In this document: piece after piece, positions 4,109 through 54,964 of the stretch | How the letters are laid out: every line of letters begins with the position of its first letter | How positions within the stretch are numbered: the stretch's first letter is position 1 | Virus record (IMG/VR): IMGVR_UViG_3300046665_000548 | Location: 248,001-312,000 of that record | Length of the DNA stretch: 64,000 nucleotides | Strand: one strand, 5' to 3' | Program-made: the position numbers and the translations under genes | Notes under the pieces: model-generated | Databases searched by the model: none | Told to the model about the DNA's origin: nothing | Seen by the model: only the letters and a program-made list of their open reading frames with translations

Positions 4109-4115
4109 ATAAGAC

Positions 4116-4190
4116 TGGCTGGGGCGGGAGGGATCGAACCTCCGAATGCGGGAATCAAAATCCCGTGCCTTACCGCTTGGCGACGCCCCA
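4116..4190 (-). tRNA. tRNA-Gln(TTG), CCA encoded
   Basis: TGGGGCG acceptor, CGGGA-TTTTGAT-TCCCG, 3' GCCA. Confidence 0.95.
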
Positions 4191-4202
4191 ATAGTCTTAA
4201 AG

Positions 4203-4287
<85 letters not shown>

Positions 4288-4291
4288 GCGG

Positions 4292-4434
4292 TGTCTAAGG
4301 GAGGAATCGAACCTCCGTTGTAGTTGATGCTGTGAGGCTCCTTCGGTTTCTTTCCGGACTTCCGCCGACGATCACGCCACAACTATCAATCTACGCCGGT
4401 TCGCCCGGTGCGTATGCCACTCCGCCACATAGAC
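4292..4434 (-). ncRNA. tRNA-Leu-like RNA with stunted anticodon arm and ~75-nt variable arm
   Basis: GTCTATG/CTTAGAC acceptor, Leu-type D arm GGCGGAGTGGCATACGC, T arm GGAGGTTCGATTCCTCC, inserted stem-loop at 4320-4394. Confidence 0.7.
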
Positions 4435-4436
4435 AA

Positions 4437-4524
4437 TGGTGTGGATACTCGGATTCGAACCGAGACGAGGTTTACCTCGGTAGGTTCTGAGCCTACTGCG
4501 TCTACCAGATTCCGCCATATCCAC
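4437..4524 (-). tRNA. tRNA-Leu(CAG), CCA encoded
   Basis: GTAGG-CTCAGAA-CCTAC, long variable arm, ACCA. Confidence 0.95.
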
Positions 4525-4535
4525 AAACAATATTT

Positions 4536-4621
4536 TGGTGCGCCAAACAGGATTTGAACCTGTACGCTCTTTCGAGCACGGGCCTCTCATGCCCGCGTGT
4601 CTACCCTTCCACCGTCAGCGC
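4536..4621 (-). tRNA. tRNA-Leu(GAG), CCA encoded
   Basis: CGGGC-ATGAGAG-GCCCG, long variable arm, ACCA. Confidence 0.93.
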
Positions 4622-4634
4622 GAGATGTACTTTG

Positions 4635-4705
4635 ATGGAGGCCCTGGATTCGAACCAGAACTAACAGGGTCAGCACCTGTCCTTCTACCGTTAAAGTAGC
4701 CTCCA
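4635..4705 (-). tRNA. tRNA-Gln(CTG), atypical (G33, no CCA, extended acceptor stem)
   Basis: TGGAGGC/GCCTCCA acceptor, ACAGG-TGCTGAC-CCTGT, GGTTCGAATCC. Confidence 0.75.
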
Positions 4706-4731
4706 TCAAAGTACACCAAAGATGAGATTAG

Positions 4732-4804
4732 CTAGGGGAGTAGGGCTCGAACCTACGACCGCCTGAATCAGAATCAGGAGCGCTACCAACTGCGCCATCC
4801 CCCA
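4732..4804 (-). tRNA. tRNA-Gln(CTG), no CCA, extended acceptor stem
   Basis: TGGGGGA/TCCCCTA, CCTGA-TTCTGAT-TCAGG, GGTTCGAGCCC. Confidence 0.9.
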
Positions 4805-4816
4805 GCTAATCTCACC

Positions 4817-5101
4817 TCAAACTTTCACACCTCCTTTCCTCATCTTCTTCAACTCTGCTTTCGATAGTTCTTTTTCCACGATGTATCGCATCGGGTCGCC
4901 GTCTTCGTCGTCAACGACCGAGAATCCGGCCGCTTTGAAAGTCCTTGGGATGTTCACCGAACAGGTGCAGTAATCCCAAATTCTACTGTCGTTCTTCTCG
5001 TAACCGTCCCGAAAGACGACCCGATCTAGACCTCCCACGAGCTTCCCGATTTGTCGGGGCGTCGTGTAGATGTGTTGTCGAAAACCTACGCTGGTGCACA
5101 T
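4817..5101 (-). CDS. hypothetical protein, first gene after the Leu/Gln attenuator
   Basis: MCTSVGFRQH... with GGAGA SD; stop lies just before tRNA-Gln. Confidence 0.7.
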   Translation of the reverse strand: MCTSVGFRQHIYTTPRQIGKLVGGLDRVVFRDGYEKNDSRIWDYCTCSVNIPRTFKAAGFSVVDDEDGDPMRYIVEKELSKAELKKMRKGGVKV

Positions 5102-10323: not shown

Positions 10324-10415
10324 TGGCGGATGGTGTAGGATTTGAACCCACGGGACCCTTTCGGGTCCGCTCCGCTTCGAACGGAGTGCATTAAGCCAGA
10401 CTCTGCCAACCATCC
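10324..10415 (-). tRNA. tRNA-Ser(CGA), CCA encoded
   Basis: CTCCG-TTCGAAG-CGGAG, long variable arm, GCCA. Confidence 0.95.
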
Positions 10416-10426
10416 TAACTGAATTC

Positions 10427-10532
10427 TTTACGGTGTGGGATTCGAACCCACGGGCGGCGGAGTATAGGTCCATCAGCACCACTCCCCGCTCTATCTTCTG
10501 GAGTCAACCTTAATCCACTCGGTCAACCGTAA
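10427..10532 (-). ncRNA. tRNA-Ser-like RNA with degenerate anticodon arm and enlarged variable arm
   Basis: TTACGGT/ACCGTAA acceptor, D arm GACCGAGTGGATTAAGGT, T arm GTGGGTTCGAATCCCAC, 36-nt arm at 10454-10489. Confidence 0.7.
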
Positions 10533-10538
10533 CGAAAC

Positions 10539-10628
10539 TGGTGGAAACGGTGGGATTCGAACCCACGGAGCCCTTTCGGGCTCGGGACTTTAGCAAAGTC
10601 CTGGGATAAGCCTCTCCCCCACATTTCC
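10539..10628 (-). tRNA. tRNA-Ser(GCT), CCA encoded
   Basis: GGACT-TTGCTAA-AGTCC, long variable arm, ACCA (discriminator A rather than the usual G). Confidence 0.93.
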
Positions 10629-53681: not shown

Positions 53682-53768
53682 GGAGAGGTGGCTGAGAGGC
53701 CGAAAGCACCCGGTTGCTAACTGGGCGAGCCCGAAAGGGCTCCGTGGGTTCGAATCCCACCTTCTCCG
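53682..53768 (+). tRNA. tRNA-Ser(GCT), no CCA
   Basis: CCCGG-TTGCTAA-CTGGG, long variable arm, GTGGGTTCGAATCCCAC; TAAATA at 53666. Confidence 0.93.
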
Positions 53769-53803
53769 CTTTTCATATATTTTTAGATGTTGCAGGTGAT
53801 GTA

Positions 53804-54775: not shown

Positions 54776-54964
54776 ATGCAGACCTCCAACCCGAACTGGT
54801 TCAAACCCGGTCCGTCTCACCACCTTTCCGAACTCGGCGTGTCAATCTTTGAAGCGCTCGCCAAATCCGGATGGGGCATGACCGCTATCGCTCGCTTCAT
54901 GCAGATCACAACGAGTGCCGTACATCGTCGCCTATCTCTCCTACGACGTGCTGGCGCGATCTAA
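54776..54964 (+). CDS. HTH-like DNA-binding protein (paralog of the previous gene)
   Basis: GWGMTAIARFMQITTSAVHRR. Confidence 0.65.
   Translation: MQTSNPNWFKPGPSHHLSELGVSIFEALAKSGWGMTAIARFMQITTSAVHRRLSLLRRAGAI

Follow-up and report, generated by a model that had tools for sequence, protein, structure and literature searches.

A predicted non-decoding tRNA-like RNA with an expanded, structured variable arm in the tRNA array of a huge phage

Introduction

The closest analogue in kind of the RNA described here is the species 1 RNA (rnaC) of phage T4, a stable RNA of 139 nt encoded inside the tRNA cluster of the phage, where its gene directly abuts tRNA genes and where species 2 RNA (rnaD) is encoded as well. 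The 5′ and 3′ ends of rnaC are paired beside a T-arm-like hairpin (CCGGG-UUCGAAU-CCCGG), and the molecule has long hairpins and no decoding arm. The engineered tRNA scaffolds of Ponchon and Dardel and the TMERs of the gammaherpesvirus MHV68, in which a tRNA-like element is fused to hairpins, use a non-decoding tRNA body for processing and stability, with another arm or hairpin being the active part. Y RNAs of the YrlA type (Rfam RF02553), which are partners of Ro60/Rsr in bacteria and phages, are modular too, combining a tRNA-mimicking module with a protein-binding helix, and the presence of a tRNA-like module in these bacterial Y RNAs has been described (PMC4201824). Finally, the tRNA-like domain of tmRNA possesses an acceptor stem and a T arm, has no anticodon arm, and has a long helix leaving its core.

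The locus analyzed here resembles rnaC by analogy only: it lies within a phage tRNA cluster, it has tRNA-like termini and a T arm, and it is predicted to be non-decoding. It occupies 143 nt between two tRNA-Leu genes of an uncultured phage, and the sections below deal with its anatomy, its conservation and its possible functions.

Results

Genome and tRNA Array

The window, i.e., the whole stretch of 64,000 nt that was analyzed, comprises bases 248,001–312,000 of a 607,744-bp phage record in IMG/VR that is judged complete. Its protein-coding genes include those for a DNA ligase, a ClpB-like ATPase and a family B DNA polymerase. Judged by this polymerase, the phage falls within a large clade of huge, uncultured phages, and its closest relatives in culture are Sinorhizobium phage Phosso, with 47% identity, and Agrobacterium phage Atu_ph07, with 44%. 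ARAGORN detects 57 tRNA genes and one permuted tmRNA in the whole genome. The latter (genome 576,377–576,796) carries the tag ANDNVAVSEYALAA and is situated outside the window, as are a tRNA with the four-base anticodon ggaa (genome 1,944–2,020) and two adjacent tRNA(CUA) amber-suppressor genes (genome 4,091–4,256) reported by the same program.

According to ARAGORN, the minus-strand array reads Gln(CUG)-Gln(CUG)-Leu(GAG)-Leu(CAG)-[element]-Leu(UAG)-Gln(UUG)-Gln(UUG). The element starts 2 nt past the CCA of tRNA-Leu(CAG) and ends 4 nt short of tRNA-Leu(UAG). Its features and its two neighbors are as follows (window coordinates; basis in parentheses).

4437..4524, minus strand: upstream neighbor tRNA-Leu(CAG), CCA encoded (ARAGORN and Rfam)
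4292..4434, minus strand: whole tRNA-like RNA gene, 143 nt, G1 at 4434 and A73 at 4292 (sequence; 154.6 bits with covariance model R2)
4428..4434, minus strand: 5′ strand of the acceptor stem, GUCUAUG, with its partner at 4293–4299 (sequence)
4410..4425, minus strand: D arm, 3-bp stem GCG/CGC, loop AGUGGCAUA with G18G19 (sequence; stem invariant in three of three homologs)
4396..4408, minus strand: stub CCGG-GCGAA-CCGG at the place of the anticodon arm, 4 bp and a 5-nt GNRNA loop (sequence)
4320..4394, minus strand: expanded variable arm, an irregular helix of 75 nt (MFE z = −3.1; all five double-changed pairs lie here)
4348..4363, minus strand: 16-nt apical loop GGAAGUCCGGAAAGAA, consensus GGAAGUCCGGAAMGAA (three homologs alike bar one A/C position)
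4337..4341, minus strand: GGAGC, 3′ strand of the internal loop below the apex (kept in three of three homologs)
4300..4316, minus strand: T arm GGAGG-UUCGAUU-CCUCC (invariant in three of three homologs)
4289..4299, minus strand: 3′ strand of the acceptor stem, CUUAGAC, discriminator A (4292) and 3′ CCG (4291–4289) (sequence)
4203..4287, minus strand: downstream neighbor tRNA-Leu(UAG) (ARAGORN and Rfam)

A tRNA Body Without a Decoding Arm

The acceptor stem comprises 7 bp (GUCUAUG/CUUAGAC) with a single U.U at 6:67 and a C-G pair at 3:70. U8 and G9 follow its 5′ strand, A26 stands between the D arm and the stub, a single C joins the stub to the long arm, and AAC joins the long arm to the T arm. 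Hallmarks of tRNA, namely the 7-bp acceptor stem, the D arm with G18G19, the UUCRANY T loop and the discriminator base, are conserved in all three homologs that were compared. A preliminary description of this locus had claimed an acceptor stem with one mismatch, D and T arms, a discriminator A, a 3′ CCG, a reduced anticodon arm and a long interrupted helix in the variable arm; all of these are present in the sequence, the long helix spanning 75 nt (4394..4320). The anticodon arm of a decoding tRNA, with its 5-bp stem and 7-nt loop, is absent, the stub loops being GCGAA, GGACA, and GCGAA in the three homologs. Since the anticodon arm is truly reduced, to a stem of 4–5 bp and a 5-nt loop that follows GNRNA in every case, the RNA should be unable to decode.

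Neither ARAGORN nor Rfam, the latter searched at the gathering threshold and at E ≤ 10, calls the element, and the sole Rfam signal on it, in the E ≤ 10 search, is a 17-nt match of the T arm to tmRNA with 10.7 bits. The comparison with Rfam proposed in the preliminary description yielded no family for the insert at either threshold. In a scan of the genome for T arms, that of the element was found outside every ARAGORN gene. Against the covariance model of the element, genuine tRNAs score 28–44 bits in end-to-end alignments that skip the arm. All five helices are recovered independently by RNAalifold. When the isolated arm is compared with shuffled sequences, its minimum free energy gives z = −3.1, −1.6, and −2.5 in the three homologs; the z-score for the whole molecule is just −1.5. 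A search for targets of the apical loop found its 16-nt complement no more often in the phage genome than in shuffles.

Conservation and Covariation

Relatives were reached through homologs of the neighboring proteins, which led to two further uncultured phages with the same array. One is represented by a 203,940-bp JGI contig (L083), whose family B polymerase is 93% identical at the amino acid level and whose homolog of the element lies at L083:7781-7928. The other is represented by Logan contigs from SRR13312979 (L089), with the homolog at L089:191-340. In both cases the homolog is placed exactly between Leu(CAG) and Leu(UAG). The three pairwise comparisons of the element give 82, 75, and 77% identity, the first two values being those of the window against its two relatives, and in the same phages the neighboring genuine tRNAs are 58–91% and the flanking proteins 52–73% identical. 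The 75–82% of the element is thereby on a par with the 64–91% recorded for real tRNAs beside it. Identity is distributed unevenly along the element, with 79–93% in the tRNA-like body, 78–94% in the apex and 36–73% in the arm strands.

Across the three homologs, 94% of the pair cells form standard pairs, vs. 39–47% if the partners are slid. Five pairs are changed on both sides, every one within the arm, and 21 of 500 shuffles reach that number of double-changed pairs. As only three full sequences from one narrow lineage enter this comparison, its statistics are weak and the covariation is suggestive. The helix that closes the apex covaries from UCGG/CCGA in the window and L083 to UUAG/CUAA in L089. 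The apical loop and the GGAGC strand are the invariant parts of the arm, and the strand facing GGAGC varies among the homologs (UGAUCG, UGGUCG, and UAAAA). Both relatives have G-C where the window has U.U at 6:67, and the pair at 4:69 takes the form U-A or U-G. The stubs of the relatives, CCGGG-GGACA-CCCGG and CCGGG-GCGAA-CCCGG, have, by means of a 2-nt indel, one base pair more than that of the window. At the 3′ end both relatives encode ACCA. The preliminary description had named a lack of conservation and covariation of the insert in relatives as an argument against its proposal; in these three sequences the insert is conserved, with compensatory changes and an invariant tip.

Logan contigs of three more public runs (X1, X2, and X3) overlap the locus. 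The X1 contig spans the 5′ two thirds of the element, and none of the differences listed for it falls in the apical loop or in the GGAGC motif; the listed difference closest to them, a C-to-U change on the RNA strand, lies in the closing helix and would leave a U-G pair there. The X3 contig spans the 3′ two thirds. X2, a Logan contig of 125,164 bp with the array, shows at least 80% likeness over window positions 4115–4318 and 4437–4900, which take in the flanking tRNAs and the 3′ end of the element. In place of the inner 118 nt it has 123 letters that are beyond alignment owing to their divergence, which suggests fast evolution or exchange of the arm.

No homolog was found in 30 IMG/VR records related by their family B polymerase, nor in the cultured relatives Phosso and Atu_ph07. 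Exact-pattern scans of viral, metagenome and genome collections with the apex motifs or with a 5′ body pattern gave no homolog, and the 3′ body pattern matched one ordinary tRNA in these collections. A pattern combining stub and T loop returned nothing useful from the collections, and single neighbor proteins used as IMG/VR queries found nothing. In the case of the 433-aa neighbor protein, synteny is lost among more distant homologs. The absence of homologs from the 30 records, from both cultured phages and from the pattern scans indicates that the element family is narrow. A search of sequencing runs returned no RNA run with the element sequence, and DNA runs with parts or relatives only.

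Other tRNA-like Features in the Window

A second non-canonical tRNA-like gene lies at 10427–10532 on the minus strand, between tRNA-Ser(CGA) (10324–10415) and tRNA-Ser(GCU) (10539–10628), and receives no call from ARAGORN or Rfam. Its acceptor stem comprises 7 bp (UUACGGU/ACCGUAA), its T arm is canonical, and a D arm and an extra arm of 36 nt are present, but just a 3-bp stem with a 9-nt loop takes the place of the anticodon arm. A counterpart occurs at L083:3422-3538 in another slot of the Ser array, with the D-arm region and the T loop conserved, and none occurs in L089. In addition, an isolated T-arm-like hairpin (ACUGG-UUCAAAC-CCGGU) is situated at 54795–54811 on the plus strand, about 1 kb from tRNA-Ser(GCU) at 53682–53769. 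As Rfam does not support a tRNA-like gene there, this hairpin is probably due to chance.

Discussion

On the strength of sequence comparison, the element is a real, conserved and selected non-decoding tRNA-like RNA, and not a pseudogene, an intron-bearing tRNA, a MITE or an SRP RNA. That it is as conserved as real tRNAs, with its helices paired, its tip invariant and CCA kept in the relatives, argues for a selected RNA and against a pseudogene. Its tRNA determinants are kept, the decoding loop is absent, the helices covary and the apex is invariant, a pattern that, as read from the alignment, is one of selection for structure together with a specific single-stranded sequence. We consider it fairly probable that the element descends from a class-II (long-arm) tRNA and functions as a small RNA that does not decode, with its activity residing in the arm and with tRNA-type processing.

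Judging from its anatomy, the element is probably co-transcribed with the tRNA genes of the Gln/Leu array. Two cuts by RNase P would release it, one at the 5′ end of the element itself and one at that of the tRNA which follows, so that the RNase P site of tRNA-Leu(UAG) would define a 3′ trailer CCGC of the element. The 3′ end would then be trimmed and CCA completed where needed, and the genome search shows that the phage encodes a CCA-adding enzyme. The intact acceptor stem, T arm and elbow would provide for maturation of the tRNA type and, presumably, for stability. Any specific activity is most likely located in the 75-nt arm, where covarying helices seem to hold out the purine-rich loop of 16 nt and the GGAGC strand; these invariant parts would be the expected contact surface for a putative protein or RNA partner. 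The element might therefore be regarded as a natural “tRNA scaffold” carrying a cargo arm. The tRNA-processed carrier of an RNA module that the preliminary description had proposed is borne out insofar as a tRNA-like body is packed into the array and the arm is a conserved structured module, the processing itself being predicted. Its other suggestion, a decoy for LeuRS or tRNA nucleases, is a hypothetical role.

A different explanation, which seems possible although unlikely, is that the element, a tRNA-like RNA that does not decode, becomes aminoacylated or acts as a sponge for a synthetase. Its CCA would be charged, probably with leucine, by the LeuRS of the host or by a mini-LeuRS of the phage. 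It could then serve as an amino acid donor outside the ribosome or in the titration or regulation of the synthetase, and the long arm would keep the RNA off the ribosome or recruit an acceptor enzyme. A73, an encoded CCA and an intact elbow are consistent with such a role, and work on minimalist tRNA-Leu of E. coli reportedly found that both the anticodon and the variable arm are dispensable for bacterial LeuRS. Furthermore, the genome encodes a catalytic core of LeuRS.

L104:1481-2785 (genome 157,481–158,785, outside the window), plus strand: mini-LeuRS, 434 aa, bacterial-type LeuRS catalytic core

The mini-LeuRS keeps the HIGH and KMSKS motifs and is devoid of the CP1 editing, Leu-specific and C-terminal domains, and its anticodon-binding domain is largely missing. 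A survey of 1.84 billion cluster representatives yielded one of the same architecture and length (P0149, 60% identity, from a phage-like contig). The mini-LeuRS and the element are both missing from Phosso, Atu_ph07 and three IMG/VR relatives, a parallel that speaks for charging of the element. On the other hand, the two genes are about 94 kb apart, and the phage encodes neither an L/F-transferase nor Bpt.

The leucine identity of the body also bears on this explanation. E. coli LeuRS recognizes A15:U48 and the placement of G18G19, in addition to A73 in the Leu identity set. In the element, AGU precedes GG in the D loop, whereas the tRNA-Leu genes of the phage itself have AAUU or AAUCU there, and the Levitt pair would be G15:C48; neither trait is of the Leu type. 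The label tRNA-Leu used in the preliminary description therefore stays tentative: A73, the position between two tRNA-Leu genes and the UGGCGG D stem speak for it, but the D-loop spacing and G15:C48 are Ser/Tyr-like and no close paralog exists among the 57 tRNAs of the phage. Leucylation of the element is possible on these sequence features. A bolder form, to which we assign little probability, would make the RNA a dedicated substrate of the mini-LeuRS and a private aminoacyl carrier excluded from the ribosome. If this were true, the tip of the arm would dock an enzyme of the phage or the host, and the amino acid would be used non-ribosomally or a tRNA-directed defense of the host would be sensed or blocked.

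It is also doubtful that the element belongs, as a partner or substrate, to the Ro60/Rsr system of the phage, be it as a permuted Y-RNA-like molecule with an Rsr-binding arm or as a tRNA-like RNA handled by a repair kit of Rsr, Y RNA and RtcB, e.g., during attacks of the host on tRNAs. The genes concerned lie just left of the window.

L087:9311-10729, minus strand: rsr (TROVE/Ro60), just left of the window
L087:10760-11900, minus strand: Y-RNA-like modules upstream of rsr, recognized by repeated motifs (together with rsr, genome 245,311–247,900)

The Y-like modules share the 5′ motif GUAGAGCAGGGUUACUU, the 3′ motif ACCCGGUUCGSCUAAUUCCG and sigma70-like promoters, and one of them, by rsr, matches the tRNA-like core of Rfam YrlA with 30.7 bits, below the threshold of 69. 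The arrangement of rsr with Y-like RNAs is conserved in L083 and L084. Genes for RtcB RNA ligase (genome 530,480–531,505, minus strand) and for the CCA-adding enzyme (genome 482,791–483,159, plus strand) are situated outside the window, and RtcB, the CCA-adding enzyme, Rsr and the Y RNAs, as annotated, make up a putative RNA or tRNA repair kit. For a link with Rsr speaks that rsr and several Y-RNA-like genes occur 5.6 kb from the element and on the same strand in the phage of the window and in both relatives, that YrlA contains the tRNA-like module mentioned above, and that the invariant GUCCGGAA resembles GGUCCGA, the metazoan Ro-contact string. However, it is the RNA adjoining rsr and not the element that Rfam YrlA matches, the element giving no YrlA match at E ≤ 10. 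The phage Y-like motif (..GCRGGUUACUU.. / ..CCUAAUUCCG..) is absent from the element, and the topology differs, as the ends of the element lie at the acceptor stem and not at a Ro-binding stem. The bacterial Rsr motif, GNCGAAN0-1G, is located near the 5′ end of the RNA, and YrlA loci are defined by a distance of at most 4 kb from an rsr gene of the same strand (PMC4201824). Of the three homologs of the element, two show this motif in the stub loop, so that it is not conserved across them, and the distance of 5.6 kb exceeds the 4 kb used to define YrlA loci. Identity of the element with a Y RNA of the YrlA type was rejected on these grounds.

It is very improbable that the element is a functionless locus, be it a decaying tRNA pseudogene that acquired a hairpin or a tRNA containing an intron, for although tRNA finders do not recognize it, its distribution is narrow and ARAGORN can force an “intron tRNA” if introns are allowed, it is as conserved as the adjoining real tRNAs in phages whose flanking proteins share 52–73% identity, it shows compensatory changes, a structure-preserving indel, an invariant apex and a CCA kept in relatives, its insert is not repeated in the genome, the forced introns are of three lengths and come with three anticodons, and the 75-nt insert is far too short for a group I intron. 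Splicing of the insert to a normal tRNA had been envisaged in the preliminary description as a counter-argument. With the option -i, the solutions that ARAGORN gives for the three homologs disagree with one another (anticodon aag and an intron of 57 nt, agg and 60 nt, atc and 77 nt), so that no conserved tRNA results from any excision. Bacterial tRNA introns are group I introns of more than 200 nt with a P3–P8 core, for which 75 nt are far too short, and the intron families of Rfam do not match the element at E ≤ 10.

Two further identities were discarded. A MITE or another repeated insertion is contradicted by a blastn search (word size 7) of the 607,744-bp genome, in which the insert is unique, the locus itself being the sole match. 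The preliminary description had seen a likeness of the cap to domain IV of SRP RNA. The string GUCCGGAA.GAA.C does resemble that domain, yet no SRP family of Rfam matches at E ≤ 10, GGAA is without a closing pair (it would be C.A or C.C), and the covariation of the apex-closing helix favors another fold.

Arrays of tRNA genes in phages are normally read only as supplies for codon usage or anti-defense. The presence in such an array of a conserved member that lacks an anticodon, retains everything required for tRNA biogenesis and bears a structured arm with an invariant tip would mean that the tRNA fold also serves huge phages as a framework for RNA functions of other kinds, and the element would be a natural counterpart to engineered tRNA scaffolds. 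With a mini-LeuRS, Rsr and Y-like RNAs, RtcB and a CCA-adding enzyme all encoded in the same genome, the element is a concrete candidate for testing in which way the charging, repair or surveillance of tRNAs is manipulated by phages. It would also be a tractable relative in kind of T4 species 1 RNA, the role of which stayed unknown for decades.

The comparison with known systems sets the element apart from each of them. It has no sequence or model homology with rnaC, as covariance model R2 matches T4 tRNAs and not rnaC, and rnaC is without a D arm of the tRNA type, whereas the element keeps the five-helix layout of class-II tRNAs with a single expanded arm. In contrast to YrlA, which ends in the Rsr-binding stem and whose “acceptor” is closed, the element ends at an open acceptor stem (CCA). 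In the Ponchon-Dardel scaffolds the cargo replaces the anticodon arm, whereas that of the element is found at the position of the variable arm, and the MHV68 TMERs differ in that their hairpins lie 3′ of the tRNA and that they are Pol III products of a eukaryotic virus. The element is not a tmRNA either, as it comprises 143 nt compared with about 360–420 nt, has neither G3.U70, nor a reading frame, nor pseudoknots, and is called as a tmRNA by neither ARAGORN nor Rfam. Among the tRNA-like small RNAs of viral tRNA clusters, the element is a new variant.
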